From sequence record NC_031043.1: 64,000 bases of DNA. One strand, 5' to 3'. Under the pieces are notes generated by a model. It was not told the DNA's origin, did not search any database, and worked only from the letters and a program-made list of their open reading frames with translations. Shown piece after piece: positions 1,379-26,265 of this stretch. Within the stretch, counting starts at the first letter, position 1; the number at the start of each line of letters is the position of its first letter. The position numbers and the translations under genes were made by a program.

Positions 1379-1390
1379 GGGGTAATCTCT

Positions 1391-2389: not shown

Positions 2390-2398
2390 GGTGACATT

Positions 2399-3322: not shown

Positions 3323-3344
3323 CAGTAAAAAGGCGGTAATGTAA

Positions 3345-4796: not shown

Positions 4797-4808
4797 GGAG
4801 TAAATGAA

Positions 4809-5798: not shown

Positions 5799-5803
5799 GC
5801 ACC

Positions 5804-6712
5804 ATGTCAATCGTACTCAATTGGAAACAGCAGCCGGGTCAGGTGTTGGATTCTATCGAAATCTACCGCTATGCCAACGCACGTGCTACACCAAACCCAA
5901 ATGCTCTCGGTACCCCGCTTGCCACATTACCGGGCGACGCTACCACGTATGAGGATACCGCGGTCATTAGCAACCAAGTGTATCAGTATCGCGTAGTGTC
6001 GGTGAAGGGAACGGACAAGGTGATGGGCTTGCCCATCGTGCAGGGATACTTCCCGTATACTGGCCCTGGCCCTCAAGAGTTGTTACGCGGGGATTGGTGG
6101 ATAGGTTACTTCGGTACACTGACCAACCAAGAGTTTTTCCTGAACTCAGCAGACATGAATGGACGAGCTGGTTTTGGCGTGTGGAACCAAAACCCAGTTC
6201 TGTTCCATAAGTTCGCTTATAAAGGGAAAATTATATTCATTCCGAACAGCCCGACTATGATGGGTACCTCGTACAATAACCAATACCTCGCAGGACTCAT
6301 TTGGGGTATGTCTGGCGCGGGACGTTTTACGCCAAACGGCCTTTCCGCCGTGGACCAGAGGAAAACGGTAATCAAAGACGGCTTCGAATACATTATTCGC
6401 TTGCCAGAGCTGTATGATAGTGGGAGCTATAGCAGCAATTATAACTCGCTGGCATTCTTTGTTCAGGGCGAGTGGTACAACACGATGGTGCGTCTTTATC
6501 GTGGAGCACCGGCAACAATGCCCGGACGTTGGGGGGATTTGGATGTTGTGCCGGGGAACGCTGGTACTGATCAGGGTGTGGCGCTTTTCGCGCAGGCGTA
6601 CAATAACCAAGTCAGTATTTACTATCGCGGCAGCTACCCCGATTCAGTCAGCACAATAAACAACGCCAACTCCGCTACAGTGTATCACGTATTAGAGTTA
6701 ATCCTTAACTAA
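5804..6712 (+). CDS. Virion structural protein, cassette type C, copy 2
   Basis: Starts MSIVLNW..IEIYR; contains GPGPQELLRGDWWIGYFG; ends VLELILN. Confidence 0.75.
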   Translation: MSIVLNWKQQPGQVLDSIEIYRYANARATPNPNALGTPLATLPGDATTYEDTAVISNQVYQYRVVSVKGTDKVMGLPIVQGYFPYTGPGPQELLRGDWWIGYFGTLTNQEFFLNSADMNGRAGFGVWNQNPVLFHKFAYKGKIIFIPNSPTMMGTSYNNQYLAGLIWGMSGAGRFTPNGLSAVDQRKTVIKDGFEYIIRLPELYDSGSYSSNYNSLAFFVQGEWYNTMVRLYRGAPATMPGRWGDLDVVPGNAGTDQGVALFAQAYNNQVSIYYRGSYPDSVSTINNANSATVYHVLELILN

Positions 6713-6722
6713 GGAGGTAGAA

Positions 6723-8252
6723 ATGGGGACCTACAGTCAATCGTCGCTAGACTTAGTCTGTCGACTGATTCACCGTGACAACCCCCAAATCGAGACACCG
6801 CTCAGTAGCGAGAACGTCATGCTATTGGGCGGGCCGTTCACTTCCGGACTAGGTAGCAGCGGGCGTAATACCCGCGTGCTTCTAAACGGGAAAACGGGTT
6901 CGGGTATAGTGGGAAAGAAAGAGTTCTTCTATGACCGAATCGATATTGGGAAATTGTTCAACGGCATCACTGTCGTATTCACTGCTAAAGGTGAAGCGGC
7001 TACAGTTGTTGACTTGTTACCAGCCCTGAATGAGCAATACGGATTAGGCTTAACTGCCGAAGACATCACCAACGGCTCTACAAAGCTCGGTACGGGTTAT
7101 TCACCTACACCGGTAACAATCACTATAGCTTCCACATCCGTCGCTTACAGAGGCTCTCTGAGCGTTATATGGACACGTCAACCGGTGGGGGTATATCCTG
7201 ACTCTGGGCCGGGAAGTAAAGTATTGTTGGTTGGGAGTTTGAACGAGGGATACTTCGGGATAGTGCAGGAAGCGGAACTCTTTAATCCACTGTTTATACA
7301 CTCGAAGCTTAACGAAGGTCAAGCTACACCGATTGGCACCCCGACGTCACAACCAGCAAACCGTTACTGGTATAAGTTTGTCCGTGATAGTAAAATTTTG
7401 TATCTGGCCAATTATAACCACATGAACGTGCGGTGGCAAGATCTATACTCACGTGGTGCTGCTTATGAAACCGACCAGCCTACCGACAAGCAATTCCCTG
7501 CGGATGGCAATATTGTCGCTCAGCGTTTCGCAATAAAGAAAGCAGAAACAGGGCGTGATTGGTACTTGTCACCGTGCATGCCGAGGCTGTCTACAGTCTT
7601 CCCATGGGACTACGAGGCTGCCAATCAGACCCCTGACCCAACGGGCGATGTCGCCCGACTCTTTGCGAAAATTGTAGCTTCGACTGGGTTCGCCACCGGT
7701 GAGTGGGATAGTCAGTCTATCGACGCTGGCGGTTTCTGGTTCTCGACCACTTCTGAAAAAGACCCCACTAAAGCATTCGGCAGTAACATGGTGGGAATAA
7801 ATCAAAACGTATACGACAAAGCTACCTACAACGGTGGGTGGCGTCCTATGCTGGAGTTAATTGATTTAGATGCTGCCGCTGTACCCCTCGAGGACTTCAT
7901 GGGTGTACCAGACGGCGTACTGCGTAAACCATTATTCACTATTAGCCCCGACACCGGAGAAGTGCTACTGATAGTGAATGACATTAGCTGGGAAGTCTCC
8001 GGCGCATTACGAAAACCTTTGTTGTCAATGGACCCATCGCCATTGATGAATGTGAATACCTTTGGCTGGCACCGATTACCTGAAACACGGCCAGTGCCTG
8101 TCCGTTTAACGCCCGACACACCGTCCCCATTAGGAACGTATGGTTGGAGTAAATTACTGAGGGCGCCGGTTGCTCAGATAACTTCTGAGTACAAGGAAGC
8201 AACGGCGGTGGATTTAAGCACTGCTGACGGCGAACTCGATGGCTTTAATTAA
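6723..8252 (+). CDS. Virion structural protein, cassette type A, copy 3
   Basis: HRDNP..RNT..FFYDR; YPDSGPG..GYFG; ends DLSTADGELDGFN; AAGGAGG SD upstream. Confidence 0.75.
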   Translation: MGTYSQSSLDLVCRLIHRDNPQIETPLSSENVMLLGGPFTSGLGSSGRNTRVLLNGKTGSGIVGKKEFFYDRIDIGKLFNGITVVFTAKGEAATVVDLLPALNEQYGLGLTAEDITNGSTKLGTGYSPTPVTITIASTSVAYRGSLSVIWTRQPVGVYPDSGPGSKVLLVGSLNEGYFGIVQEAELFNPLFIHSKLNEGQATPIGTPTSQPANRYWYKFVRDSKILYLANYNHMNVRWQDLYSRGAAYETDQPTDKQFPADGNIVAQRFAIKKAETGRDWYLSPCMPRLSTVFPWDYEAANQTPDPTGDVARLFAKIVASTGFATGEWDSQSIDAGGFWFSTTSEKDPTKAFGSNMVGINQNVYDKATYNGGWRPMLELIDLDAAAVPLEDFMGVPDGVLRKPLFTISPDTGEVLLIVNDISWEVSGALRKPLLSMDPSPLMNVNTFGWHRLPETRPVPVRLTPDTPSPLGTYGWSKLLRAPVAQITSEYKEATAVDLSTADGELDGFN

Positions 8253-8264
8253 GAGGACTTTCTC

Positions 8265-9245
8265 ATGGCCTTAAAACTGAAATGGAAGAACCCCAACAAA
8301 GGGGCAACCAGCGTAGAAATCTATCGCGGTGATACACCCGACGTGGATTTAACGACCCCGCTTGTCACCTTATCCTCAGGCGAGTTAGCATGGGTAGATA
8401 CCACTGCGTTGTTTGGCAGTACCTACTATTACGTCTGGGCGGTTAACACTGCTAACGACCGTGTGGTCAGTCGTCCTCAGAAAGTGGAAGTCGCAGACCG
8501 TAAAGGTCCCGGTCCAAATACGTTGCAAGCTGGTAATGAGTCTTACGGATATTTTGGTTCCGTGCCGAGCGCGGACTTCGTTAATAGCTCTACTGTATTA
8601 GCCGCATTAAAAACTTTGTCTGGTATCCCGGGCGGGACATCCTACCCAACGTGGTATAAGTTTATCCGGAACGGTAAAGTTCTGTTTGTGCCTAATACGA
8701 CCTTCGGTGACGTGTCTTGGATTAGTCTGTATAATGCAGGGGCGGTTTATGGTACGGACGATAACGGCGGTGTAAACTCGCCCAATAACGTGAATCAGAT
8801 GACCACCTTTGAGTTAAACGGTGACCTGTTCTTGGTACGTTTAGCTAAAGGCGTTCCCGAAAACATGGAGTGGGACGGCACAGCGGTTAATTTGAACACC
8901 CTACCCGCGGCGCAAGGTATCTATGCAGAATACGAAGACCTCATGTATCCGTTAATTACCCTTAGCCCTTTACGAAAACGGATGGTTACTGTTGATGCTG
9001 TAAACCCCACTTCAATAATTCCATCCGGGACTTACAGCAACCGCACATCATACGGCGTAGTTATGCAGGAAGCAGCTACCGTAGCTAACTCAGTACAGCG
9101 TGGTGGCGGCACGTATAATTACGACGCGCATTCCCGTGGGACTATAGAGTCATTCTCTTTACGAGGACGAACGAGTGCTTGCTGTTGGTGGCCTGTAATT
9201 GAATACATTGGTCGTGTCGGCGAAATAAACTTAGCGAATGCATGA
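8265..9245 (+). CDS. Virion structural protein, cassette type B, copy 3
   Basis: Starts MALKLKWKNPN..VEIYRG; GPGPNTLQAG..GYFG; WYKFIRNGKVLFVP. Confidence 0.75.
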   Translation: MALKLKWKNPNKGATSVEIYRGDTPDVDLTTPLVTLSSGELAWVDTTALFGSTYYYVWAVNTANDRVVSRPQKVEVADRKGPGPNTLQAGNESYGYFGSVPSADFVNSSTVLAALKTLSGIPGGTSYPTWYKFIRNGKVLFVPNTTFGDVSWISLYNAGAVYGTDDNGGVNSPNNVNQMTTFELNGDLFLVRLAKGVPENMEWDGTAVNLNTLPAAQGIYAEYEDLMYPLITLSPLRKRMVTVDAVNPTSIIPSGTYSNRTSYGVVMQEAATVANSVQRGGGTYNYDAHSRGTIESFSLRGRTSACCWWPVIEYIGRVGEINLANA

Positions 9246-9254
9246 GGATAGAAC

Positions 9255-10157
9255 ATGGGTATTACAATCGAGTGGGACAATCAAGCCGACCAGCAGTTGG
9301 ATGCGATTGAGGTTTATCGTTCAACATCACCTATCGATGAAAACAGTCCCGGCGTCCCCATTGCAACCTTAAGCGGCACAGACCGACAATACATCGATAA
9401 TGACGTGCGGGTTGGCAACACCTATTATTACCGAGTGGCCGTGAAGAAAGGAGAGAATCGCTCCTTTGGTGCTAATCAAACCCAGGGGTACTACTCCAAT
9501 CTAGGTCCTGGACCGCAGAAGGTTATCAGGGGGGATTGGGTACGAGGATTCTTTGGGGAGATTCCTCCGGTTGAATGGACAACGGTCACTGATGTTACCG
9601 ACAAGATTAAAGCGCAGTTAAAATCCTTAACGGGGATTACGCTTGCATCCAACACCGGTGCAATATGGTATAAATTTGTGTACAAAGGGAAAATCCTATT
9701 TCTTCCCAGTTTGCAGATGATTGTCAGTAATAACTGGCAGAACGGCTATAACGCCGGGTTTATTTACGGCGTGGACGGATTTGGCAGTACGCCAGACGGT
9801 GATGCAGGTGCCGTTAATCAGTTGACGGTGATTGAGGTCGCTGGGCAGCAATACATTGTCCGTGCGATTCGTCTTAGCGATAAACCAACTTCTCAGTATC
9901 TGACAGACCCGTTGGACTTCAATGACAGCGAATGGAAATCAACATACGCGCGTTTACGTACTGATAATGCAGCGTTGACTGACCCTACAATCCAACCGCG
10001 CTTCAATGACTTGGGTTCTATAGTTGGTACAGGTAGCGCGCACATGGCGGATGCTACCAGTCTAGCCACAGTATCGAACTCTACTCCTGAAACGCTAACC
10101 AAGGCACTTAAGACCAGCAGCATCAGCTGGATGGTTGTGCTTGAGTTAATACCGTAA
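9255..10157 (+). CDS. Virion structural protein, cassette type C, copy 3
   Basis: Starts MGITIEW..IEVYR; GPGPQKVIRGDWVRGFFG; ends VLELIP. Confidence 0.75.
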   Translation: MGITIEWDNQADQQLDAIEVYRSTSPIDENSPGVPIATLSGTDRQYIDNDVRVGNTYYYRVAVKKGENRSFGANQTQGYYSNLGPGPQKVIRGDWVRGFFGEIPPVEWTTVTDVTDKIKAQLKSLTGITLASNTGAIWYKFVYKGKILFLPSLQMIVSNNWQNGYNAGFIYGVDGFGSTPDGDAGAVNQLTVIEVAGQQYIVRAIRLSDKPTSQYLTDPLDFNDSEWKSTYARLRTDNAALTDPTIQPRFNDLGSIVGTGSAHMADATSLATVSNSTPETLTKALKTSSISWMVVLELIP

Positions 10158-13858: not shown

Positions 13859-13892
13859 AAAAAAAGAACAAGGTGTGCCCCGAAGGGCACAC
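13859..13892 (-). terminator. Intrinsic terminator closing the radical SAM operon
   Basis: On the minus strand GTGTGCCC-TTCG-GGGCACAC (UUCG tetraloop, 13873-13892) is followed by CTTGTTCTTTTTT, 3 nt after the stop at 13895. Confidence 0.85.
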
Positions 13893-13894
13893 GC

Positions 13895-14551
13895 TTAGGC
13901 TTCTGCTACAAACTTCTCACGCATGCCTTTGAGTTTAGTGTACTCACTCTTCTCGGCCGCAATACGTGCGTCCCGTTTAAAGTCAGTCAACTTCTCATGC
14001 AGCGCGTTCGTACGGCTTACGATACCTGAATTCAACGCTTTCAAATCATCCAGCGTAAACTCCAGCTTTTCGTTATTCGCGTCCACCCAGTAACCCGGGC
14101 TTTCATCGACACTGAGATAACGAGCAATCGCAGCCAGCGCTTTTTCATCAGTCTGGTAAACACGCCCACCCAGCTCGATAGGTTGCACTACCGCTTCGCT
14201 GTATGCCTGATTTACCCACGCAATCAAATCGTGCAGCAGTGCGTAGCACTTGCCTGACGTTGAGATACGCTCTGCCTGACGGGTTGCCAAATCGATTTCC
14301 AGCACGTCTTTGATAAACGTGTGTGCTGACTTAAGCACGAACTTAATCTCCAGCGGAGACAGTCCCTGCTCTTTCAGCTGAGCGGAAAGCTCGTCGTCTT
14401 TCATCCCATCGAGTAAACGATAGTGTGCCAGACGTGACAGCGACGGGTTCCAACGACCATCACTCAGATGACCATCGACGAACTGACCGTGACGGTCGAC
14501 GAGTTTCCCGCTGTTCAGGAAACGATTTTTTATTTCGTCATTACTAAGCAT
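13895..14551 (-). CDS. DUF4376-like tail-fibre-associated protein
   Basis: The C-terminal half PIELGGRVYQTDEKA..YWVDANNEKLEFTLDDLKAL..K resembles the DUF4376 pattern (G..f..D..s..W..aDN..v.lt...l..l), a domain usually encoded beside tail-fibre genes. Confidence 0.55.
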   Translation of the reverse strand: MLSNDEIKNRFLNSGKLVDRHGQFVDGHLSDGRWNPSLSRLAHYRLLDGMKDDELSAQLKEQGLSPLEIKFVLKSAHTFIKDVLEIDLATRQAERISTSGKCYALLHDLIAWVNQAYSEAVVQPIELGGRVYQTDEKALAAIARYLSVDESPGYWVDANNEKLEFTLDDLKALNSGIVSRTNALHEKLTDFKRDARIAAEKSEYTKLKGMREKFVAEA

Positions 14552-15093
14552 TCAGTTTTCCCCACGATGCCGATATCTTTCAGCAGACCGTAGTCGAGGA
14601 ACTGATAGTCCTTGGCCAGGTCGTACTGCCAGATGAGGTTGTTAATACGTTGCTCTTCCGTAATCTCTTCGGCCGTATTGAACACCCCTACGTGTTCCCA
14701 AATCTCAAAGTAGTTACATTGGTCTTTACTGTTGCGGACAATAAGGACTTTATTGAGTGGGAACGACTGCGCCACTGCAACCAGAGAAGTTACCGCTTTA
14801 CCGTGATTGGTACGGTACAGCACTTTCAGTTTGCTTGGCGGGGTTTCCAGCATACGCTCTTCGAGACCGGTGTTACGCAGCTCAGCCTGTGCCAGTGAGT
14901 TGTGACCCTGCTCCACGCAGTCCAGTTCAATCAGCACATTCAGGGAATGACGCACCACCAGTCGTTTAACAACGTCGGTGTAGTTCTCAGCTTTACACAG
15001 CAGAGTTACATCGAACAGCTTGTGCTTCGTCAGGAACTGGTCCAGCAACGTTGTATCAAGCCTGGTAAAATTGTGAATCAGTAATGACTTCAT
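14530..15093 (-). CDS. Hypothetical accessory protein of the radical SAM operon
   Basis: Open frame overlapping both neighbours (translational coupling); start placed at MKSLLIH; no motif recognised. Confidence 0.55.
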   Translation of the reverse strand: MKSLLIHNFTRLDTTLLDQFLTKHKLFDVTLLCKAENYTDVVKRLVVRHSLNVLIELDCVEQGHNSLAQAELRNTGLEERMLETPPSKLKVLYRTNHGKAVTSLVAVAQSFPLNKVLIVRNSKDQCNYFEIWEHVGVFNTAEEITEEQRINNLIWQYDLAKDYQFLDYGLLKDIGIVGKTECLVMTK

Positions 15094-16417
15094 TGGTCTT
15101 TTCCTGTTTAACTGGAGCGTGCTTATGTTCAACTGCCGGAGCTTCGGGCTGAGCACGTGAAAGGGTTGGGAGTTTGTTTTGTGCGGATGCCTTCACACGG
15201 CACTCGTAGCAGTTACAGGACAGTTTCTCGAACTGGTCACCATAAGTGCCGAAACGACGTTCCCACCATTGGGCGGTCAGCAGTTTAGCCGTAGTCCAAC
15301 CACACTGGCGGCGCTCAGAGTGATAAGCTTTACGGGCTTCTTCTTCGCCATCGCCATTCTCATACGCAGCGGCCACGCAGGACGCACAGATGTGTTTGGC
15401 TGGGCAACCCAGACATGCATCCGGGTAAGACTGCCACTGGGTCTGTACTTCGTTCAGCAGTTTGCCACCGTCGGTGTTGATAATCTCACGACCAACCAGT
15501 TTGGCAATTGCTTGACGCGTAGTGACCGTTGACATGAAGCGGTTACAACCGTAGATGTTACGGTCAAAGCCGAGACAGGTCATGTGTACCGTGGTACCAC
15601 AGTGAGGACGCAGACGCTCTGGGTCGTAACGAATCTGATCGTCATGCAGAAGCTTTTCACGCCAGTCCGGTTTCCACAATTCATCGACGTTCATGCCACG
15701 TGGGGTAATGTGCCCCATTTCAGCGGTCGGGTCTTTGTGCAAATCTTTACCAATCCAGTATTCCAGCACTTCAATCATCTGGTTAGAGATGCCGAGCGCC
15801 ATATCACGTGGAATGATATCTTCGAAGACCATGTTACCGTAGATAGTACCACCGCCTGATTGGTCAATCAGGGACTTCATGGACGCCGCATAATGCTTAA
15901 GCGTGTCGTGAGTAAAGGTGGCTTTAATACCCAGGTCATTAATCTTCATGGACTTGAGGTAATGGTAGCCTTCCAGCGCCTTCTCATACGAGCCCTTACG
16001 GGAAGTCGTAAAGATACGGTGCTTATCGTGCGTTTCAGGCAGACCATCGATTGACACGCCGATAGACAGCTTCGGATACCAGCGCTCAATGATTGAACGG
16101 TTCAGCGGTTTATCAAACAGCGTGCCGTTCGTGGAGATGGAGAACATGTACGGACGATTGTCTCGTGCCGCCAGAATCTCTGCAGTTTCAAAGGCCGCAA
16201 TCAGCAGCTTCGGTTGCAGGAAAGGTTCACCACCGATAATGTCGATAATCGCGCCACCCAGGTTAGGTTTACCTTTGTCGCGGTCAAAACAGGCGTGGAT
16301 GAAATCCACCACATCTTCTACACGGTTATTACGTGGAAACTTGCGCTCGTAGCAGTAATCGCAGTCGAGGTTACACGACAAGTTCGTAACAATCTGATAC
16401 GTTACGTCCATAGCCAT
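15056..16417 (-). CDS. Radical SAM/SPASM peptide maturase (CXXX-repeat target type)
   Basis: CNLDCDYC (CX3CX2C), GGEPFL, ISTNGT, VSIDG..HDKHR, and C-terminal CX7CX9C plus CLGCPAKHICASC (CX2CX5CX2C) plus RQC, i.e. SPASM-type auxiliary cluster ligands. Confidence 0.9.
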   Translation of the reverse strand: MAMDVTYQIVTNLSCNLDCDYCYERKFPRNNRVEDVVDFIHACFDRDKGKPNLGGAIIDIIGGEPFLQPKLLIAAFETAEILAARDNRPYMFSISTNGTLFDKPLNRSIIERWYPKLSIGVSIDGLPETHDKHRIFTTSRKGSYEKALEGYHYLKSMKINDLGIKATFTHDTLKHYAASMKSLIDQSGGGTIYGNMVFEDIIPRDMALGISNQMIEVLEYWIGKDLHKDPTAEMGHITPRGMNVDELWKPDWREKLLHDDQIRYDPERLRPHCGTTVHMTCLGFDRNIYGCNRFMSTVTTRQAIAKLVGREIINTDGGKLLNEVQTQWQSYPDACLGCPAKHICASCVAAAYENGDGEEEARKAYHSERRQCGWTTAKLLTAQWWERRFGTYGDQFEKLSCNCYECRVKASAQNKLPTLSRAQPEAPAVEHKHAPVKQEKTNEVITDSQFYQA

Positions 16418-16430
16418 AACAGCATCCCCC

Positions 16431-17303
16431 TCAGGAGTTAAGATTCAGGTAATTGTGCAGATACTTGTAAGTCTCTACACCGATAATTTGTGCCATGGCG
16501 TTACAGCCTGAGTTGACGTAAAACTCTACGTTCTCATTGTGCTTAATATCGCCGTTCGGCTCGACCAGTTTCAACTGGCCACAGGCATTACAGTTTTCGT
16601 GGTCGAAGAACTTCTCGAGACGGAAGACTGTATTAATCCCATTCACCGAATTCAACTCACGCATCTGAGACTCTAACTGCTTATAGCCGTAGATAAAGTT
16701 CAGAACATGATCCTGATTGAGAGGTTTGGCCATCAGTTTGTCAAACGTCAGGGTCATTGCACCCAAACGCAAGTGATGCATTGCCGAATGTAAACGCAAC
16801 GTATCTTCAAACCAGCGTGGCTTACTGACTTGTTCGCGGGTCAGCACGCCCCACGTAACGACATTGTCCAGCTCAGACATCACTTCAAAAGCTTCTTGCG
16901 CCCCGTCTTCCACAAACGCCATCAGACTGCGGTCACCACCTTCGAAGGTATCGATGGAGACGATGATGCGGTCAAACGTTTTCAGGAACTCGAGTTGCGA
17001 GAGCTTAAGTTTACGGCCATTGGTAAACAGCAGGTGTTTTGCAGAAGGCACTTGCTCACGCGCCTGTCCTACGAAGTCGACTAACTTCTGATAGGCAAGC
17101 AGCGGTTCGCCACCAGTCCACAGGAATTCCTCGACAAGAGGATTTTCTTTTATAATGTCCACCATTGCCTCTTTGTGTTTTGTTTTCGAGACATCACCTT
17201 TCGCCATGTGAGCCGCTCCTCCACAGAAGGAGCAGTTCAGGTTACACTTCGACGTAAGCGCAATGTCAATCATGGTTGCAGACGACTTAGGGGTATCGTG
17301 CAT
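16431..17303 (-). CDS. Second radical SAM enzyme with a short, twitch-like C-terminus
   Basis: CNLNCSFC (CX3CX2C), WTGGEPLL, FTNG, IVSID; C-terminal CNAC..VEPNGDI..GC. Start is uncertain (MHDTP at 17303 or MIDIA at 17273). Confidence 0.85.
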   Translation of the reverse strand: MHDTPKSSATMIDIALTSKCNLNCSFCGGAAHMAKGDVSKTKHKEAMVDIIKENPLVEEFLWTGGEPLLAYQKLVDFVGQAREQVPSAKHLLFTNGRKLKLSQLEFLKTFDRIIVSIDTFEGGDRSLMAFVEDGAQEAFEVMSELDNVVTWGVLTREQVSKPRWFEDTLRLHSAMHHLRLGAMTLTFDKLMAKPLNQDHVLNFIYGYKQLESQMRELNSVNGINTVFRLEKFFDHENCNACGQLKLVEPNGDIKHNENVEFYVNSGCNAMAQIIGVETYKYLHNYLNLNS

Positions 17304-18228
17304 CAGGATTCTTTTTCCACAGATTTTCCATGAAAGTGAAAATCGGGTCTGTGAGTCGGACGTTCTCACCGGCCTTAATCAAGCGCTTATCATGGTACGC
17401 CTCAAGAATAGCATCCAGTACCTTATTCCGGTCGTTCAAACGATTCAGTTCACCCACGGTAACTTCACTGCGAGTAAAGGAACTGACCGCCTGTTGCTCT
17501 TCGGCCGACAGGAGTCCCGCTTCATTGACTTTACCAACCAAGAAGGTCAGTACACGATGTAAGTCAGCGGTGGTATTAGGTTGCTCACCGTATTCACACT
17601 GAACCAGATAATTCGTCCATGGCTTACGGATACGTTTGGTAATCTCGTATTCGTCCGTGATTGCGGTCCACTTCATATCACGGTGTTGCCATGTAAATTT
17701 GTAGGAGTAAGCCCACAAGTCAGCCAGACAATCAATGCCCAACTCTTCGTAACCTTCAACCGGATAGTAACGCTCCAGGTTGTGGTAATCGGCATCCGGC
17801 ACTTCTGCTGCTTCAACCAGCGTATAATAGAATGGGAAGGAAGACGGGTACTCCCAGCCCCACTGACGCTGAATCATCGGCACCATGCCGTTTTCTTTAA
17901 ACGAAGCGAACACCATCTCGATAGGCATGGAGTAGTTCAGTACCGCATCGGTAAAGAAATACTTGTCGTTCACCAGCTTGCCGAAATACTCATCCGTACC
18001 GTTTAAGATGTACAGGATTTTAATGTGCAGACCTTCCGGAGTCGTGAACTCTTCACGGACTTCCGCGTTGTCTAAAATATCACGAGGACGCAGACGAGGG
18101 AACTCGCCCGGGTTCATGCAGATTAAACGCAGACGGTCGTTGACGTGTGCATCAACGCTGTCAGGCAACCCGAGGTGAATCGGATAGTTAAAGTTGGTGC
18201 GGAAGGCAAGATGCGAATTATTCTTCAC
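17287..18228 (-). CDS. Hypothetical accessory protein of the radical SAM operon (about 313 aa)
   Basis: GTG at 18228 is preceded by TAAGGAG, which overlaps the stop of the 69-aa gene; the longer ORF-track start at 18318 overlaps that gene. No motif recognised. Confidence 0.65.
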   Translation of the reverse strand: MKNNSHLAFRTNFNYPIHLGLPDSVDAHVNDRLRLICMNPGEFPRLRPRDILDNAEVREEFTTPEGLHIKILYILNGTDEYFGKLVNDKYFFTDAVLNYSMPIEMVFASFKENGMVPMIQRQWGWEYPSSFPFYYTLVEAAEVPDADYHNLERYYPVEGYEELGIDCLADLWAYSYKFTWQHRDMKWTAITDEYEITKRIRKPWTNYLVQCEYGEQPNTTADLHRVLTFLVGKVNEAGLLSAEEQQAVSSFTRSEVTVGELNRLNDRNKVLDAILEAYHDKRLIKAGENVRLTDPIFTFMENLWKKNPDARYP

Positions 18229-18238
18229 GGAAAACTCC

Positions 18239-18448
18239 TTAGGAAGGCCAAGTGACTGCTTTTGCGCCACCGGACGATGACCAGCTACAGCTGCCATTGC
18301 AACGGTAAGATGCGGCATTAATGCCGTTTAAACGGTTAGCATTGTTCACGGTACCGCGCGTCGCAATATAGGTGTTCGCTTGGGCGGTAGTGATGTAACC
18401 TTCAATACGTGCGAGTTGTACGCCAACCTCATTAAGGGATACGGCCAT
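18239..18448 (-). CDS. Short CXXX-family paralogue P3 (69 aa, only 2 Cys)
   Basis: MAVSLNEV..NNANRLNGINAASYRCNGSCSW aligns with the N-termini of P1 and P2; TAAGGAG SD. Confidence 0.8.
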   Translation of the reverse strand: MAVSLNEVGVQLARIEGYITTAQANTYIATRGTVNNANRLNGINAASYRCNGSCSWSSSGGAKAVTWPS

Positions 18449-18457
18449 GAGAACTCC

Positions 18458-18856
18458 TTACGGTCCTGAGCACCCGGAGCAACCCGTACATGAACTGGAG
18501 CAAGAACCAGAACAACCACCCGAGCAACCACCAGAACAGCTCGTCGAACAAGTCCCTGTACATGTTCCCGTACAGCTACCAGAACAGCCACCTGCGCAGC
18601 CTCCCGTACAGCTGGAAGAACATGAAGAACCACAGGTACCTGAACAGGTACCGGTACACCCGCCCGAACATGCAGAACCACACGTCCAACTGCAGGTGCC
18701 GCCACAGTGATAATAGTTTGCGTCTTGACCACCAAAGCGGTCTACGTTGTTTGAGGTTTTTGACCCAATGTACGACTGTACACCGGCTTCGGTTTTAAGA
18801 GCGGCTGATTCAATGCTGTTAAGCTGTGTTTTTACTGCATTAAGTCCAACTGGCAT
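18458..18856 (-). CDS. CXXX-repeat protein P2 (radical SAM target candidate)
   Basis: 50-aa N-terminal part followed by an 82-aa Cys/Ser/Gly/Thr tail with 21 Cys (18 CXXX units, then CTG CSG CSGP); TAAGGAG SD. Confidence 0.9.
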   Translation of the reverse strand: MPVGLNAVKTQLNSIESAALKTEAGVQSYIGSKTSNNVDRFGGQDANYYHCGGTCSWTCGSACSGGCTGTCSGTCGSSCSSSCTGGCAGGCSGSCTGTCTGTCSTSCSGGCSGGCSGSCSSSCTGCSGCSGP

Positions 18857-18868
18857 TTTTTTATCTCC

Positions 18869-19255
18869 TTACATCGGACCGGAACAGGCAGAGCAGCCTG
18901 TGCAGGAACTTGAACAGGAGCCTGAGCAGCCTGCACCACACCCGCCAGAGCAAGATGAAGAACATGCCGAGCCGCAGCCACCGACACACGTCCCGGAACA
19001 CGTCCCTGCGCAAGAACCAGTACACGTACCAGAACACCCGCCAGAACAGTTACCCGAACAGCTCGAACAACCAGAGGTACAGCCTGCAGAACAAGTCCAA
19101 CTACAACTCCCGTTACAACGGACGTCGCCGGGACTCATTCCTCCTAAGAAATTTGAGTTATATGCTTTCGATGCCACCTGTGCATCCACCGATGGACCGG
19201 TAGCGATTTGCAGGCGGGCCATCCTCGCACTAACATCGTTGAGTTTAACGGCCAT
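18869..19255 (-). CDS. CXXX-repeat protein P1 (radical SAM target candidate)
   Basis: 46-aa N-terminal part followed by an 82-aa tail with 21 Cys in CXXX/CXX spacing; AAAGGAAG SD. Confidence 0.9.
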   Translation of the reverse strand: MAVKLNDVSARMARLQIATGPSVDAQVASKAYNSNFLGGMSPGDVRCNGSCSWTCSAGCTSGCSSCSGNCSGGCSGTCTGSCAGTCSGTCVGGCGSACSSSCSGGCGAGCSGSCSSSCTGCSACSGPM

Positions 19256-19269
19256 ATGCTTCCTTTAAA

Positions 19270-19310: not shown

Positions 19311-20510
19311 TTATTTGGTGCCTGCCGCAGACTGAACGTCGTCGCGTGTGGTCAGGTTGGCGTTGATGTGAACGTTTGCCTGTACAACACCACCCGTGTT
19401 CTTGTTCAGGTACTGGTCGTGCGGGTTTGCCGCCGACTGGTGGTTTGCCAAGTTCTGGTTAGTAGTCGCAAGGTTACGCTCAAGCGCAGCAATACGGTTT
19501 TCTAAGCCAGCGTTAGCATTACCCATATCCGCAATCTGCTGTTTCAGGTTAGCGATTTCCTGATTAGCAGCCGCCAGTCCTTGCTTCAGCGTGTTAAGCT
19601 GCTGAGACAATAACCCGACCTGCGTTTCCAGTACCAGAATCTCATCCATCAACTCAGCAATTTGCAACTGGGTTTTCTGGTAGTTCTGGTCAACCACGTT
19701 TAACTGGGTGTTCCACGTTGCAATCGAACTGACCAGTGCCGCAATCTTCTGCGCCAAATCAGTGTCGGTAGCATTCAGAGTACCAATGTCTTGCAGGACG
19801 GCGTTGATGTTGCTCTGCACGGTCTGGACAAGCGCACTGACTTCTGCGGTAGAGTACACGTCCAGTTGACCACGGGTCAGCTTGTGAACGTTACCTTCAG
19901 CATTACGGTGCTCTTCCAATGCATCGAGCATCTCTTGACGATACGCTTTAAGCATGTTTTGAATCTGTACCATTTCGGCACTGGCACCCAGACGGATGGC
20001 ATCGTTCAGCTTAGACAACAGCGTGACGATATATTCAAAACCAAAGAAGTCACCGAGGTCACGGAATGCCGGAGCACCCGCAAACTCATCCGGAATGTTA
20101 CGCAGTTCGTAGAAGTTGATAGTCGGGTCGTCTAAGTCCAACGACTCCACACACTGGATAATACTTTCTACGTTAGCGGCGTACGGCCCACCCACAATCT
20201 GCGCGCTGACAGTAATGTCGGATGGAACAGACGATTTGGTGATTACGATAGCGGTCGCAATCTCACGCCCACCCACCATTTTGGTTAATGACGGATGCAA
20301 CAGAATCGCTTCGTAGTTTGTTCCGCGTACCAACGGTTGGTTGGGAGCATTCACCGGAGCAATTCGAAGCGTATCAACAAAGAACGGACCTGTCGGGAAA
20401 GCAAACGCTCGGTTAATGGTTCCCGTTCCGAGTTTAATCGGATGAGAGACCGCGTTACCGGTGTTAGTTCCAAACAGGTCCAATGGGTACTGCATTATAA
20501 CCTTACTCAT
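19311..20510 (-). CDS. Short tail-fibre-like coiled-coil protein
   Basis: Shares the YPLDLFG..N..F.TGPFF..L N-terminal domain with the three large fibres; long heptad-rich segment; HQSAANPHDQY motif. Start placed at MSKVI (AAGGAG SD). Confidence 0.7.
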   Translation of the reverse strand: MSKVIMQYPLDLFGTNTGNAVSHPIKLGTGTINRAFAFPTGPFFVDTLRIAPVNAPNQPLVRGTNYEAILLHPSLTKMVGGREIATAIVITKSSVPSDITVSAQIVGGPYAANVESIIQCVESLDLDDPTINFYELRNIPDEFAGAPAFRDLGDFFGFEYIVTLLSKLNDAIRLGASAEMVQIQNMLKAYRQEMLDALEEHRNAEGNVHKLTRGQLDVYSTAEVSALVQTVQSNINAVLQDIGTLNATDTDLAQKIAALVSSIATWNTQLNVVDQNYQKTQLQIAELMDEILVLETQVGLLSQQLNTLKQGLAAANQEIANLKQQIADMGNANAGLENRIAALERNLATTNQNLANHQSAANPHDQYLNKNTGGVVQANVHINANLTTRDDVQSAAGTK

Positions 20511-20565: not shown

Positions 20566-23500
20566 TTACATGCTCAGTGAGGAATCATGAATCATAACAT
20601 CAAGGAGAGCAGCCCACTGTGCATCGTAATAGATGTCAATGTAACGGCCTCCCGCGAATGTTCTTTCTTCCGTCCAGTAAAAGACTGGGGCTTTAGTGGT
20701 ACTATCCGGCCGCAGTGCCAGAATGTAATCCTTTCCTGTTGGTACAGTTAAGGTATACAGACCGATACTACTCGGCCCCGGAACCGAGGCAGGGATTGCT
20801 GGGGTAGGGAGAATGACCGCAGTCATATCCAACGAAGACGATACGAGCTTGGTTGCCCCATCCTGTATCAATTCAAACGCGATATAACACGGTGTATTCC
20901 CTGGCGCCTCCTTCACAACCAAACACAAAGCGTTCACTTGGTTTAACAATAGACCGCCTGAGCCGATAGTAAAGGACTGCGTACCGCCCGACCCACGAGA
21001 TACCCCGTTGATATAAATATCGACTGAGTCATCCACCTGCACGTTCAACACCAGATTCAGCGATGTTGGCGTAAAGTAGGTCTTCGTTCCCCATACAACA
21101 CCTGCTGCCAACGGTGGGGCATTCACCTTAATCGCTGGTGCAGCTAATGGCGGTGTATAGGAGTTGGTCGACTGCAGAACTTGTGGCCAGAGTTTCTCCA
21201 CTTTATTCGTAGGTTGGAACCAGTTCCCATTACTTACCTGTGGCAGGGTAATACGCTGCACCGCATCAAATGCACCGGCTAACGCGTTCGCATTGTCTAA
21301 TGCGGCGGCGGTGCCGTATGCTTTCGATAGGTCTGCACCCGGACGGCCAAGGTTCCAGAATCGTGTTGCATTCTGAGACGCCGCACCATACCCGAATCGA
21401 CAACTACGAGCAAACGTCGGGGCAGCGACCGCTAAATCAACTTCCAGATATTTATACGTCGGGTCATTACGCAATTGCCCTAAAGACAGTGCGCGCTTCG
21501 CGGCGTTAATTGTCCGGATGTTGGTGTCACGGTCACCAGTAGTCGGCAGCTTCGCACGTTGTACCGCGATGTAAAGCTTATTACCGCGACGCTCTACGTA
21601 CGCATGAGCATACCACGTGTTCCAAGCCAACTGGTCAACCACGGACGTATCCACAACACCAACTGTACGAGCATTGGATTGCAGATAGTTTTCTTTCAGG
21701 ACCGTAATCGATTCTGCACCCAGATGACCTTCGATGGAATTACTGATAACCAAACACAACGTTTGTTCACGACTGGCCGCGTTCTCGTTGGCTTTTAAAG
21801 CAGCCACAACAATCGCAGTCGCGTCGTTATCGGTATCGTTGGAGGTAATTACCGTGTTGAAGACGTAATCCCCTACCAGCTCATCAGAGATGAACCCGAC
21901 AAACGTTGCGGTGTTCAGTGTACATTCCACGATGTCATCGGCTGCCACATACTTCCACGCCAGCAGTTCACTTTCGTTAGCCGGACGGGTTTCTGTAGTA
22001 GTTGCGTGACTGAAGCGATACCAGCTGTTATAGATATCTTGGAAGGACGGGAATGAGAACGTGTTAATCGTGCCCAAGTTCTCCATGTTCGAGTAAATGG
22101 ACTCGGTCAGACTCCCGCCCGGAAGGTAGCCGTGCGCATACGGGTTATCCGCGTGTGCCAGTAAAGCCCCTACCTGCCCCAAACGTTTCACACGGGTGAT
22201 GTTCACTTCGCCTAACGCGTTAAGTGTTGTCACCACGTAACCAATGTACAGCCGAGAGTCCGTATCCGCCAACTGTGTTTTGGATACCAGATACTCAGCA
22301 GCCCCGGTGGTTGCATTTAACTGCACGTGGAAATAGAACGTCTGGTTCTGATACCCCGATGGGAACAACGCCTTGAAGTCAAACTGGCTGACCGGGACGA
22401 TATGTTCTTCCATCTTCGCAAAGAAAGGAATTGCCTGGGTGATATACAACAACATCCCTTCTGCCAGCTGAGGACCAAACAGAATCACCTGACGAGAAGG
22501 ACCCGTTGTGAAGTTACGGGAGTTGTTTGAATACGCGGTGCCGCCGTAATACGCCCCATTCGAAATCCATTGCGCTGCCAGAATCTCGTTGGTTTCAGGT
22601 AAATGCACAATATCGTATTCACCGTACGCCGGGTTAGCGCTATCTCTCGATAGTGTCCAGTTCGCAAAGTTCAGGTCACAGGTAATCGTTGGGGTGTACA
22701 TCGTCCCACCGCCCACTGTAGGCATATACCCTAACGCATGCGTGCGAATAACCCAACCGTCTGAACGTTTGATTAACCGTAACTGCCAGTAGTCGCCCGT
22801 AACTGCAAAACCTGTGGTAGCAGCATTAACACGATCTTCTGTGGCGATGGTCGTTGTACCACTAAAGTTTAAGGTCAGCACCCCTGCCGCAAAGGTCATT
22901 GGGACACGGAACGTATAGTAGTACATGTAGTTGATACCGTCAGCCTCTGTTTGACAGAATGTTGCGGTAGCAATACAAAGGTTCACGCCCCCTAAGTCGA
23001 AGAGGTTCAGCCAAGTCACTTTCCATTTAGAGGCAGCTTCACTAAACTTCGGAATGCGGCTGACCAACATGGATTGGAAATCCGCCCATTGGGTCGTGCT
23101 CACCGTCACCCGGTCCGCGTGCACCGAGGCGTTACCGTTGATGTTTTTGTAAGCGCGAGTTTCCGCTTGGTAGAACGCGGTACCGTTAAGGTAATTATTC
23201 GTACCATCAAACACATAAGCGCAACGTGCTAACGTGTTATAGGTTGCCTCAGGTAAAGAGGTGCGGTCGTTACTTGGACCCCATCCGCCGTAACCCGGGA
23301 AGTTATAAGACCCCGCGGTATCGTACCCGGTCTGAATACAGTCGCCGGTGTTAGTGCGACGGAACAACGCTTTCTTTACACTGTTCCCTAACTGAATCAT
23401 CCCACGCATGCGATACTGGTAAACAGACCCATACGCACCCAACACAGCTGGCTCACCACCCATGCGACCTGTTAACGGATTATCCCAACGTAAAGCTTCG

Positions 23501-26265
23501 AACGGGGTTTTACCGCCTAAGCTAATACGTACGTTGTAGTTGTCACTGTTCGAGTTATCATTCCCGATGACATCGAAATACGTCTTCCGCACAACGTTAG
23601 AGTTAATTCGGTTGCCGTACAAAGAACCGTCTGAGTTATTGGTGTGATAATTCCCACCTTTATCAGTTACCCCATTCTCGTTCAACTCCATTGGCAAGAA
23701 GTCATCGTCTAACGTAACTGTTTTAGCAGTCAAGTCCAAAACATACGAAATCTGCCATTTGACGCCCCAAGCCGTTACTGAGTTAGAGATGTGAGTGCTA
23801 CAGTTAGCGCGTAAACGAATCTTCTTATCCTGTCGCGCATGTAACCAGTTACGACGTGCCGAGTGAACCACGTTCCGTGCACCTGTCCATTTCGCGTCCC
23901 CCGCAGGGGTCACGTAATACAAACTCGTGGTGTTTGGGTCCGTGCTATTAACAGCGTACGTCGCCAAGCGTCCCACGTTACCATCGGGGTACTTACCGGC
24001 CAGCGGGACTGATGCGAAGACCGTATCGGTTTTACTGAAATCGCTAAGTGGTATAACCCACAAACACGTGTACATCTCATTGCTATTCAGCAACGGTCTA
24101 ACTACATAAACGTCCTTATCAACGATATGGATATAATCCGCACCGGGTAAAGGAACAAAGTCGTATTGACCCGAAGCACGGGGCACCGGTGCGTAAGTAA
24201 CACGCACCACGTCAGTGTGTTTGGCTGCGTCAGCTGTCCCGTTAAAGAGAACCAGGTAGTACAGCGCGTCAGTACCGACAAAGATAGCAGCATCATCACC
24301 AGTAACGCACACACGCATCAGTTCAATACCCGGATACTTTTTAGCCATTCCTGCGGGCTTATACTGCACCGCGGTAGACAGATACGACGTATTTGAAAGA
24401 TTGTCCGTGCCCGGGTCGCAATCGCGATACCAGTAGAACACCCGCTGCGAATCCACATAGCCGTCCCAACCGTTGCGCAGAATATACAGACGCCCATCTT
24501 GCACAATCTGCATGGCATTGAAATCACCATCGATGAGAGATGAGGTTCCTTTATACTGCCCCGCTGTCGGGATAGGTAAGAACCCGGAGTCGCCGTAGTA
24601 CGTTCCGTTGGCCACCCAGCTTGGTAACAGGTTTAACGCTTTATCCTCTGCCGCATCGATTTTCAGTTTCAAATCGTAGCCCAGTTTAGACGTCGCTGCC
24701 TTATCAGTAGTGGCATCCAAAATGGTGTAGAGGTACGTTAAGCCTGAGACCGTCTCAGAAGCCGTAGGGACGTTTAGCAGATCACTGGCTACGTGACTGT
24801 GGACTTTCAACGCTTTGTTCGTCAGGGCGTCACGGAAGGGCTGTGTGACAGGCTTATCAGCAGGGGCGGTGTTATTCACGTTACCTAAGCCGAAAGATGC
24901 CTTCGTCAGGTTGATGGTCTGCGTTGCACCGAAAGCAGCACCGTTGATTTTGAAAGTCTCATCAACGTAGTTGTTCAGTTTCAGCAGTAAGTCATTAACG
25001 CCTTTCTGCGACAACGCGTAGTTTGGTGCAATTACCTCCACGTTATCTGTCAGACGGAACAGTCCTTCAACGGTATCCGTAGCCGATGGCGGTTGGGCTG
25101 CCATGTTCACCGGAGAAGTCGCTGAACCATTACCACCAATACGTACAGTCGGCGTAGAGGTAAAGGTAGGTTGTGCGTTCGAGTTCAATGGCGGATAAAG
25201 GTAAACCGTCACTGTCGATGGAGTAATAAGGAAAGCGCCGTTATAAATCGGACGGACGTCTTTCGCTCCAGCAGCACTTCCTTTCGACGGCACGAACAGC
25301 TCATCATAACCTGCCCGGGAAGAAACCCCGATACCGCGGCCATTGTTGTCACTGTCAGCGGCCAATTCAACAACCGCTTCGGTTCCGGTCAACAGGATTT
25401 TCCCTGCTGAGAACCGTAAGGCAGACTTACCATCTGCTGTGGCGTAGACCAGTTCGTCGTTGTTAATCGCACGGAAGCGTCCGAACACCTGACCCATGGT
25501 ATCATCAATCAACGTATCGACGACACGCTGAGAGATTTTGTTCTCTACCATAATCGCAACCAGCTGTGCTAACGTCTTACTGAACGCTTTCACGGCATTG
25601 GTTGCTGCCGCATCGACAGCTAACGCCCCAACGTCTGCTGGAGTGTATTTGTGCTGATGTGGGGTCTTGTGGTGCTGGAACAGTTTGTCGTCGTACATCT
25701 TTGCAGCAGAGCGTGACAGTGCTGTAATCGCTGCATCGATGTCCGTGTCCAGCTGACCTGCCTTCTCTTCAATCTTGAGACGGATGTTGTTGATAGCCGC
25801 TGCAATCGAATCGCGAGCGATGGCTTCATCCAAATCCTTCGGTGGGTCAACCGGTTCAATGGGAATCTGGTAGCGCATGAGCGCCGACCAGTCGGTATTA
25901 CGTGGCTCGGTAATAGCCGGGTTAACGAGGAACTTGCCGATATCCGACTCAGGGACGGAATAAGAAGAACCGAGTACCTGCAACTTATAGGTAATCTCGG
26001 TCTTCGTCAGCAGCATTATCCCGCCGAACAACTGAGCGCTTGCGGCGTGGGCACCGGCAGAGTAATACAACGCGAGGTAGTAGTCGATACCTTCGAATAG
26101 CAGGTTACCGTCAGTATCCTTAATCTCTAAGCCGTTACGGAAGAAGGGTGCCTCGAAAGGCACCACTAAGTTGAAACGGTTAGGATAAGTTAATGTACTG
26201 AGTGAACCCTCCGCGATGTTATCAGGGCTTTCACCCGTCAAATCTTCGGGATAATGTGTTCTCAT
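20566..26265 (-). CDS. Large tail fibre protein (1899 aa)
   Basis: Shared YPEDLTG..PFEAPFF N-domain, HKTPHQH and LGNVNNTAPADKPV fibre motifs, beta-rich body, and a C-terminal VDDSVDIYING carbohydrate-binding-like module. Confidence 0.75.
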   Translation of the reverse strand: MRTHYPEDLTGESPDNIAEGSLSTLTYPNRFNLVVPFEAPFFRNGLEIKDTDGNLLFEGIDYYLALYYSAGAHAASAQLFGGIMLLTKTEITYKLQVLGSSYSVPESDIGKFLVNPAITEPRNTDWSALMRYQIPIEPVDPPKDLDEAIARDSIAAAINNIRLKIEEKAGQLDTDIDAAITALSRSAAKMYDDKLFQHHKTPHQHKYTPADVGALAVDAAATNAVKAFSKTLAQLVAIMVENKISQRVVDTLIDDTMGQVFGRFRAINNDELVYATADGKSALRFSAGKILLTGTEAVVELAADSDNNGRGIGVSSRAGYDELFVPSKGSAAGAKDVRPIYNGAFLITPSTVTVYLYPPLNSNAQPTFTSTPTVRIGGNGSATSPVNMAAQPPSATDTVEGLFRLTDNVEVIAPNYALSQKGVNDLLLKLNNYVDETFKINGAAFGATQTINLTKASFGLGNVNNTAPADKPVTQPFRDALTNKALKVHSHVASDLLNVPTASETVSGLTYLYTILDATTDKAATSKLGYDLKLKIDAAEDKALNLLPSWVANGTYYGDSGFLPIPTAGQYKGTSSLIDGDFNAMQIVQDGRLYILRNGWDGYVDSQRVFYWYRDCDPGTDNLSNTSYLSTAVQYKPAGMAKKYPGIELMRVCVTGDDAAIFVGTDALYYLVLFNGTADAAKHTDVVRVTYAPVPRASGQYDFVPLPGADYIHIVDKDVYVVRPLLNSNEMYTCLWVIPLSDFSKTDTVFASVPLAGKYPDGNVGRLATYAVNSTDPNTTSLYYVTPAGDAKWTGARNVVHSARRNWLHARQDKKIRLRANCSTHISNSVTAWGVKWQISYVLDLTAKTVTLDDDFLPMELNENGVTDKGGNYHTNNSDGSLYGNRINSNVVRKTYFDVIGNDNSNSDNYNVRISLGGKTPFEALRWDNPLTGRMGGEPAVLGAYGSVYQYRMRGMIQLGNSVKKALFRRTNTGDCIQTGYDTAGSYNFPGYGGWGPSNDRTSLPEATYNTLARCAYVFDGTNNYLNGTAFYQAETRAYKNINGNASVHADRVTVSTTQWADFQSMLVSRIPKFSEAASKWKVTWLNLFDLGGVNLCIATATFCQTEADGINYMYYYTFRVPMTFAAGVLTLNFSGTTTIATEDRVNAATTGFAVTGDYWQLRLIKRSDGWVIRTHALGYMPTVGGGTMYTPTITCDLNFANWTLSRDSANPAYGEYDIVHLPETNEILAAQWISNGAYYGGTAYSNNSRNFTTGPSRQVILFGPQLAEGMLLYITQAIPFFAKMEEHIVPVSQFDFKALFPSGYQNQTFYFHVQLNATTGAAEYLVSKTQLADTDSRLYIGYVVTTLNALGEVNITRVKRLGQVGALLAHADNPYAHGYLPGGSLTESIYSNMENLGTINTFSFPSFQDIYNSWYRFSHATTTETRPANESELLAWKYVAADDIVECTLNTATFVGFISDELVGDYVFNTVITSNDTDNDATAIVVAALKANENAASREQTLCLVISNSIEGHLGAESITVLKENYLQSNARTVGVVDTSVVDQLAWNTWYAHAYVERRGNKLYIAVQRAKLPTTGDRDTNIRTINAAKRALSLGQLRNDPTYKYLEVDLAVAAPTFARSCRFGYGAASQNATRFWNLGRPGADLSKAYGTAAALDNANALAGAFDAVQRITLPQVSNGNWFQPTNKVEKLWPQVLQSTNSYTPPLAAPAIKVNAPPLAAGVVWGTKTYFTPTSLNLVLNVQVDDSVDIYINGVSRGSGGTQSFTIGSGGLLLNQVNALCLVVKEAPGNTPCYIAFELIQDGATKLVSSSLDMTAVILPTPAIPASVPGPSSIGLYTLTVPTGKDYILALRPDSTTKAPVFYWTEERTFAGGRYIDIYYDAQWAALLDVMIHDSSLSM

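Follow-up and report, generated by a model that had tools for sequence, protein, structure and literature searches.

Cysteine-ladder proteins beside radical S-adenosylmethionine enzyme genes in the tail-fibre block of Erwinia phage vB_EamM_Phobos: candidates for a cross-linked fibre component

Cross-linking by radical S-adenosylmethionine (radical-SAM) enzymes has so far been known from small peptide natural products and from a few cellular proteins. We have analysed a window of 64,000 nucleotides (the whole stretch of DNA considered here) from the genome of the jumbo phage Erwinia phage vB_EamM_Phobos (NC_031043.1; 229.5 kb, genus Derbicusvirus), to which it is 100% identical, position 1 of the window being position 124001 of the record. 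This window contains two adjacent paralogous genes, here called P1 and P2, each encoding a protein that ends in a long tail with a cysteine at about every fourth residue. They are followed by a short paralogue, P3, and by a string of genes that includes two radical-SAM enzymes.

The cassette and its cysteine numbers

The genes of the string and the feature at its end are as follows, all on the minus strand.

18869..19255, minus strand: P1, 128 residues, consisting of a 46-residue N-terminal part and an 82-residue tail with Cys at every fourth residue (21 Cys; direct count, match to phrog_6085)
18458..18856, minus strand: P2, the 132-residue paralogue of P1, with a 50-residue N-terminal part and an 82-residue tail of the same kind (21 Cys; direct count, matches to TIGR04114 and phrog_6085)
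18239..18448, minus strand: P3 (gp166 of the record), a 69-residue paralogue with a like N-terminus and junction and a 20-residue tail with 2 Cys (phrog_6085)
17287..18270, minus strand: gp165, a 327-residue cassette protein (PHROG match, phrog_8030)
16431..17303, minus strand: gp164, a small radical-SAM enzyme of 290 residues with a CX3CX2C motif (PF04055)
15056..16417, minus strand: gp163, a radical-SAM/SPASM enzyme of 453 residues (PF04055; alignments to TIGR04115 and PapB)
14530..15093, minus strand: gp162, a 187-residue cassette protein (PHROG match, phrog_7988)
13895..14551, minus strand: gp161, a DUF4376 protein and the final gene in the string (Pfam PF14301, E 5e-10)
13873..13892, minus strand: terminator-like hairpin directly past the gp161 stop, with an 8-bp stem of which 6 pairs are G-C, followed by a T-rich tail

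From P1 to gp161 neighbouring genes either overlap or are separated by at most 13 bases, and both radical-SAM genes lie 1-3 kb downstream of P1 and P2 within this tightly packed string. Judged from its sequence, the hairpin at 13873-13892 is the likely end of the transcription unit that holds the cassette.

An earlier note, made from the letters of this DNA, had claimed that the repeat tails of P1 and P2 are identical in size in spite of divergent sequences. A direct count bears this out: the P1 core (residues 47-128) and the P2 core (residues 51-132) each comprise 82 residues and 21 Cys, with the first Cys at positions 47 and 51, respectively, and both start with CxGxCSWTC and end with CSGSCSSSCTGCSxCSGP, as described there. 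Almost all of the residues are Cys, Ser, Gly, Thr or Ala (76 of 82 in P1, 80 of 82 in P2); neither core contains any Asp or Glu, and the tails are also devoid of Lys and Arg. Successive cysteines are four positions apart except for the last two gaps, which are of three residues in both proteins, and one additional gap of three that only P1 has (Cys63 to Cys66) and that is offset by its terminal Met, giving three short gaps in P1 and two in P2.

The note had also stated that the N-termini and the codons of the two genes have diverged, and our comparison agrees. Three features had escaped it, namely P3 with its 20-residue core, the downstream radical-SAM genes and the annotation of the opposite strand in the public record. 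The N-terminal 'leader' parts of P1 and P2 (46 and 50 residues) share only 15 identical residues, and the N-termini of P1, P2 and P3 are about 30% identical in pairwise comparison. The two cores are identical at 54 of 82 residues and at 146 of 246 bases; of their last 20 residues they have 17 in common, only 2 of which are encoded by the same codon. A recent gene conversion of the tails was considered and ruled out, because the amino acids match while the codons mostly differ; the similarity between P1 and P2 has thus been maintained in the protein sequences. Between Phobos and EarlPhillipIV, the ratio of synonymous to nonsynonymous codon differences is 35:7 in the P1 core, 47:5 in the P2 core and 19:11 in the P2 leader; the cores are thus more tightly constrained than the leaders, and the tail residues other than Cys are likewise under strong purifying selection.

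The order P1, P2, P3, gp165-like gene, small radical-SAM gene, SPASM radical-SAM gene and gp162-like gene is kept in every SPN3US-like jumbo phage examined. The comparison covered the genera Derbicus-, Seoul-, Erskine-, Machina- and Wellingtonvirus, many uncultured genomes and a number of distant contigs, and the same order is found in the distant contigs L020, L104, L109, L110 and L065. A gp165 homologue always stands between P3 and the small radical-SAM gene, and in all distant cassettes a gp162-like protein of 170-183 residues is encoded directly after the SPASM gene; gp161 has the same position in SPN3US, L105 and L110.

In these genomes and contigs P1 has 21 Cys, with the exceptions of L109 (19), L020/L021 (15) and L065 (31). 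Within the 21-Cys group the P1 core ranges from 78 to 84 residues and combines CXX and CXXX units in at least eight different ways, so single-residue length changes have recurred without touching the Cys count. P2 has 21 Cys in the Derbicusvirus group and likewise in L060 and L109; in most other lineages it has 20, with an Ala in place of one Cys. Wellington-like genomes have 23, and L020, L064 and L065 have 16, 29 and 35, respectively. P3 is the third gene in every lineage, and its tail is always short (12-24 residues). The N-termini of the P1, P2 and P3 types are recognisable in all lineages, which implies that the three proteins diverged before the lineages did and that the Cys numbers of P1 and P2 changed in parallel afterwards, giving P1/P2 pairs of 15/16, 19/21, 21/20-23 and 31/35. 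More widely, the runs of 120 metagenomic homologues comprise between 8 and 31 Cys if a fragment with 4 is disregarded, the distribution peaks at 18, 22 and 24, and the examples read suggest that the number is fixed within each subfamily.

The note had named as speaking against a constraint that repeat numbers should vary widely and freely between closely related phages. This is not what we found, P1 having 21 Cys nearly throughout, in spite of differing CXX/CXXX patterns and of synonymous differences at more than half of the core codons between Phobos and EarlPhillipIV. On these comparisons the Cys count is conserved far beyond what would be expected from the divergence of the DNA. As to the note's proposal that equal length and equal Cys number together reflect a structural constraint, the Cys number stands, with a rough matching between P1 and P2, while the equality in residues does not, for exact equality of length occurs in only three of about ten lineages and the two tails elsewhere differ by 1-9 residues. 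What is supported by the sequences is a constraint on Cys number, not on exact length, with a rough matching of the two tails.

That P1 and P2 are of one size might nevertheless be functionally meaningless, the size having been inherited from the duplication and kept because codon-diversified repeats rarely slip. In agreement with this, the DNA repeat copies within the cores are 60-71% identical and contain no long exact repeats, exact length equality is confined to the three lineages mentioned, and P2 is up to 4 Cys off P1 in some lineages. However, the number of units did change (15, 19, 21, 29, 31 and 35 Cys), and once P1 and P2 had diverged it went the same way in both; the repeated single-residue length changes in P1 never altered its 21 Cys; and the cores are under strong purifying selection. 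We therefore give this explanation little credit.

Several variant arrangements were met in the course of the comparison. In L033 an additional small radical-SAM gene (3545-4456; 303 residues, gp164-like) lies between P1 and P2, and the same is seen in L038, L054 and L058, all of them uncultured genomes of the SPN3US-like group. In L020 (9220-14085) and L021 the whole cassette (15/16/2 Cys) lies beside an Acb2/Tad1-hairpin family gene, a GIY-YIG gene and a chaperonin gene, and this lineage has a third radical-SAM gene about 5 kb upstream of the cassette. L066 (5001-7530) shows the reverse layout, in which a SPASM radical-SAM gene (34% identical to gp163) precedes three short peptides that have another leader and contain 10, 7 and 6 Cys at CXXX or CXX intervals.

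Family matches, structure predictions and tail-fibre context

P2 matches TIGR04114, the NCBIfam family 'Cys-rich repeat-containing protein, radical-SAM target', with 25.6 bits, above the cut-off of 20, and P1, a clear paralogue of P2, scores just below it (17.8 bits). P1 (E 5e-39), P2 and P3 (E 3e-24) all match phrog_6085, a family of unknown function, which is their only PHROG match; no tail family is matched by P1-P3 in Pfam or PHROG. Most of the homologues are marked by the precomputed Pfam family PF27846 (tSAM_targ_Cxxx_rpt).

Both gp163 and gp164 contain the CX3CX2C motif and match PF04055 well above its gathering score of 29.5, with 47.8 and 41.2 bits, respectively. The best NCBIfam matches of gp164 are to HxsC, MoaA and viperin-like families, in each case with a score that falls far short of the cut-off. 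gp163 aligns to TIGR04115, the CXXX-repeat maturase, over model positions 4-342 of 359 (113.7 bits, cut-off 350) and to the PapB family over positions 12-319 of 330 (113.6 bits, cut-off 340), these being its top two matches; it is not a member of TIGR04463 (54.3 bits, cut-off 525). In the five gp163 homologues compared, the CX3CX2C motif and eight further C-terminal cysteines are invariant. Full-length alignments to SPASM models, together with these C-terminal cysteines, place gp163 in the SPASM subgroup, and by the same scores it is a distant relative of the thioether-forming SPASM maturases that falls into no named family. TIGR04116, which we take to be the third protein of the CXXX-repeat radical-SAM target system, gave no match among the nine cassette proteins at E values up to 0.1.

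AlphaFold2 was run on P2 with an alignment of 21 sequences. The mean predicted local distance difference test score (pLDDT) is 43.8, and a helix at the N-terminus (residues 5-36) is predicted with modest confidence; for the tail, where pLDDT is below 40, the model holds neither a confident structure nor a solenoid, a result that speaks neither for nor against a solenoid. The model of gp165, on the other hand, is confident (pLDDT 90, predicted template modelling score 0.87). Besides its own orthologue it has no structural neighbour in PDB or BFVD, and gp165 may, to judge from this model, represent a new fold; its family is tiny, with 23 representatives among 1.84 billion proteins. Sequence searches of PDB gave no match for P2 and no meaningful match for gp165.

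The genomic context of the cassette points to tail fibres. In jumbo phages it lies within a block of tail-fibre and chaperone genes, and in the window it follows genes for a fibre protein and for a protein of the baseplate periphery:

19311..20510, minus strand: gp169, a virion structural protein with a long coiled coil, directly upstream of P1 (phrog_2163)
20566..26265, minus strand: gp170, a structural protein of 1899 residues, further upstream; its counterpart in SPN3US is SPN3US gp168

The counterpart of gp169 in Proteus phage 7 carries the annotation 'viral fiber protein'. SPN3US gp168 has been described as a tail protein resembling phiKZ gp131, which is itself located at the baseplate periphery (PMC5105663).

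Outside the jumbo phages, a T7-like contig (L050) encodes a single CXXX protein after a gene for a T7 tail-fibre N-domain, and a lambda-like contig (L051) encodes one directly after gpJ. In both contigs the CXXX gene is followed by a radical-SAM gene of about 270 codons homologous to gp164, and the CXXX protein and the radical-SAM gene are the sole pair common to the jumbo, T7-like and lambda-like contexts. Furthermore, longer homologues carry N-terminal domains of the PHROG tail-fibre families 5073 and 8443 together with a C-terminal phrog_6085 match, which begins near the model start and so includes the part that forms the 'leader' in P1-P3. As the 'leader' is itself fused behind tail-fibre N-domains, we argue that the N-terminal part serves as a structural module rather than as a leader to be discarded.

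A proposed cross-linked fibre component and its alternatives

The explanation that we favour, with moderate confidence, is that gp163 and gp164 act on P1, P2 and the short paralogue P3, all produced within the tail-fibre gene block, and that the three proteins become a fibre component made of a cross-linked cysteine ladder. The N-terminal 46-50 residues or so, consisting of the helix and of a conserved junction that ends at Cys-Ser-Trp, would act as a docking or assembly module, while the tail would present a ladder of cysteines, at every fourth residue, among very small residues. gp163 and gp164, probably aided by gp165 and gp162, would convert the thiols to covalent cross-links in a fixed series, most likely thioethers to neighbouring residues, which we propose because of the relatives of gp163 and of the precedents PapB and CrpC described below. 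The outcome would be a stiff rod, resistant to proteases and to redox conditions and attached through its N-terminal module. Each Cys would then have a defined partner, which would fix the Cys number, and the similar numbers in P1 and P2 would mean that the two tails form one shared structure or are measured against a common partner. Among the constraints on Cys number suggested in the note, which were side-by-side pairing, cross-links and metal sites, the neighbouring radical-SAM and SPASM genes favour such a fixed set of cross-links. The fact that P2 passes TIGR04114 and that TIGR04115 and PapB head the matches of gp163 lends support to the role of the two enzymes, as do the close packing and the conservation of the cassette and the extra small radical-SAM gene of some lineages. 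That the cysteines are modified, by which bond, that the proteins reach the virion and that P1 pairs with P2 we infer, the pairing being drawn from the co-variation of the two Cys numbers.

A number of points weigh against this explanation. Both the modification of the cysteines and a place for P1-P3 in the virion are deduced from sequence, and the AlphaFold2 model gives the tail no structure. For TIGR04115 and PapB the scores of gp163 remain far under the curated cut-offs, and with neither Asp nor Glu in the tails the chemistry of PapB cannot simply be transferred to them. The matching of P1 and P2 is only approximate (21/23, 19/21, 31/35), with co-variation that rests on few independent lineages, and low input from slippage, given repeats that are 60-71% alike, may account for part of the constancy. 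Finally, the cassette of L020/L021 lies away from recognisable tail genes.

P1-P3 could alternatively be precursors of peptides that are made on ribosomes and modified after translation (RiPPs), in which case the leader would be cut off and the cross-linked core would act free, within the host cell or once it has lysed, for example by killing microbes, chelating metals or countering defences, and would be no part of the virion. The layout of leader and core, the matches of the TIGR04114, TIGR04115 and PapB types, and the presence of several paralogous precursors next to maturases, as in the bacterial-type cluster L066, all agree with this, as does the position of the L020/L021 cassette beside an Acb2/Tad1-hairpin family gene and at a distance from recognisable tail genes. 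However, the cassette contains no leader protease or exporter that NCBIfam, Pfam or PHROG matches would reveal, and in other phages tail-fibre N-domains precede the entire phrog_6085 module, with its 'leader', in one protein; the module also occupies tail-fibre slots in the T7-like and lambda-like contigs and lies inside the tail-fibre and chaperone block in jumbo phages. A RiPP role thus appears improbable to us.

It is also conceivable that the cysteine ladders are not cross-linked by enzymes at all, and that they bind metal ions or iron-sulfur clusters or form disulfides after release, with the radical-SAM enzymes serving another substrate in the tail module. Such a role, of which the metal-binding form had been suggested in the note, would suit the extreme composition of the cores, where Cys makes up 25% amid small residues, much as it does in metal-thiolate proteins, and the failure of AlphaFold2 to give a self-standing fold fits a structure that depends on metal or on a partner. 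We nonetheless regard it as unlikely: the CXXX protein and the radical-SAM gene are the only pair that all three phage contexts have in common, P2 passes a curated model for radical-SAM targets, the purifying selection on the tails extends to residues other than Cys, and no sequence match to metallothionein-like proteins was found in Pfam or PDB.

Comparison with known systems helps to place the proposed cross-linked fibre component. The nearest is the catalogued CXXX-repeat system (TIGR04114/TIGR04115/PF27846), which likewise has Cys at every fourth position among small residues and a radical-SAM/SPASM gene next to the target; both the repeats as a family and their association with radical-SAM enzymes are thus already on record, and what we describe is not a new kind of system. 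The Phobos cassette differs from it in that its maturase is only a distant relative of TIGR04115 (113.7 bits vs 350), in that a second, small radical-SAM gene and the cassette-specific gp165 and gp162 are added, and in that the targets are a fixed trio with a fibre-like N-terminal module, located in phage tail modules. To our knowledge the chemistry of the CXXX-repeat family has never been determined, and literature searches on it found nothing.

The second is the ranthipeptide system PapA/PapB (freyrasin), in which PapB makes thioethers between Cys and Asp or Glu, so that a repeat peptide comes to bear a series of short rings (PMC9413430, PMC10739248). The alignment of gp163 covers almost the whole PapB model; in contrast, the acidic partners that PapB uses are missing from the P1 and P2 tails, gp163 stays below the PapB cut-off (113.6 bits vs 340), and PapA has six motifs, compared with 21 here.

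The third is the Crp system of Methanococcus voltae, where the SPASM enzyme CrpC installs thioether cross-links on CrpA, a large Cys-rich repeat protein (PMC13692751). CrpA and its paralogue CrpB are encoded in the same gene cluster and have a common leader-like N-terminus of about 47 residues ahead of the Cys repeats, and of the two only CrpA has been tested as a substrate (PMC13692751). The likeness to Phobos lies in a SPASM substrate (in Phobos a proposed one) that is no short peptide but a large protein of Cys-rich repeats, and in the paralogues with a leader-like N-terminus. However, Crp repeats are of 17 or 34 residues with C-X-X-Q/D motifs and not CXXX, gp163 reaches only 54.3 bits against the TIGR04463 cut-off of 525, the Crp proteins are archaeal and cellular while those of Phobos are viral, and the N-termini of P1, P2 and P3 are only about 30% identical to one another.

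The last comparison is with phage tail fibres that have repetitive shafts. The cassette occupies tail-fibre slots, and its longer homologues have fibre N-domains ahead of phrog_6085, whereas P1-P3 themselves match no tail family. We know of no tail-fibre family whose shaft has a Cys in every fourth position or that is paired with a radical-SAM enzyme of its own. In the literature we found no published treatment of the fibre context, of the fixed trio, of the two extra cassette proteins, or of conserved and co-varying Cys numbers.

A bolder form of the proposal, which we put forward only tentatively and think rather doubtful as a whole, is that dedicated radical-SAM enzymes make a covalently laddered rod at the tips of phage fibres; in giant phages P1 and P2 would stand side by side on a base formed by P1, P2 and P3, with the Cys number acting as a ruler of length, and the module would have spread among podo-, sipho- and myovirus lineages. 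If the proposed cross-linking is true, radical-SAM chemistry of the RiPP type would serve in the construction of virus particles as well, the 'orphan' radical-SAM genes beside the tail genes of many large phages would be explained, and there would be a natural example of a long, regular thioether ladder. The conserved Cys number also gives structural work a concrete prediction that can be counted.

Coding strand, public annotation and a neighbouring module

In the public record, the region of P1 and P2 is annotated with two open reading frames (ORFs) on the opposite strand, neither of which we judge to be a gene:

18447..18710, plus strand: antisense ORF annotated gp167, over P2
18768..19268, plus strand: antisense ORF annotated gp168, over P1

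The strands were tested by the ratio of synonymous to nonsynonymous codon differences between Phobos and EarlPhillipIV; bias at third codon positions was dropped as a test because the third positions of the minus frames and of the annotated plus frames coincide. For the P1 region the ratio is 55:18 in the minus frame vs 44:35 in the plus frame, and for the P2 region 66:16 vs 51:31. In EarlPhillipIV the plus frame over P1 is interrupted by stop codons, and all three minus-strand starts (P1, P2 and P3) have Shine-Dalgarno-like sequences upstream. By these sequence measures the Cys-rich minus-strand proteins P1 and P2 are real products under purifying selection. That the plus-strand ORFs of the record (rich in Pro, Glu and Gln) are the true genes, with the Cys-rich frames as their antisense shadows, can hardly be credited, since their annotation in the Phobos record and the inability of third-position bias to separate the frames stand against the better ratios in the minus frame, the stops in EarlPhillipIV, three minus-strand paralogues each preceded by a Shine-Dalgarno-like sequence, the PHROG and NCBIfam models and the homologues in many phages that match the minus-strand proteins, and neighbouring genes that are all on the minus strand.

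Similar annotation is found elsewhere. In SPN3US, the call named gp166 covers P2 but is out of frame with it, and neither P1 nor P3 has a call. The locus is mis-annotated at the two sites in the window (18447-18710 and 18768-19268, both plus strand) and at 7074-7409 of L008, and several other records leave it uncalled or call the wrong strand. Since most public records either lack these genes or give them a wrong strand or frame, and since the tails contain no Lys or Arg, standard virion proteomics could not have detected P1 and P2.

Elsewhere in the window, on the plus strand at 47-10157, a virion-structural module of three genes occurs three times in tandem (443/332/307, 483/329/302 and 509/326/300 residues); for the two pairs of paralogues compared, identity is 36% and 29%.

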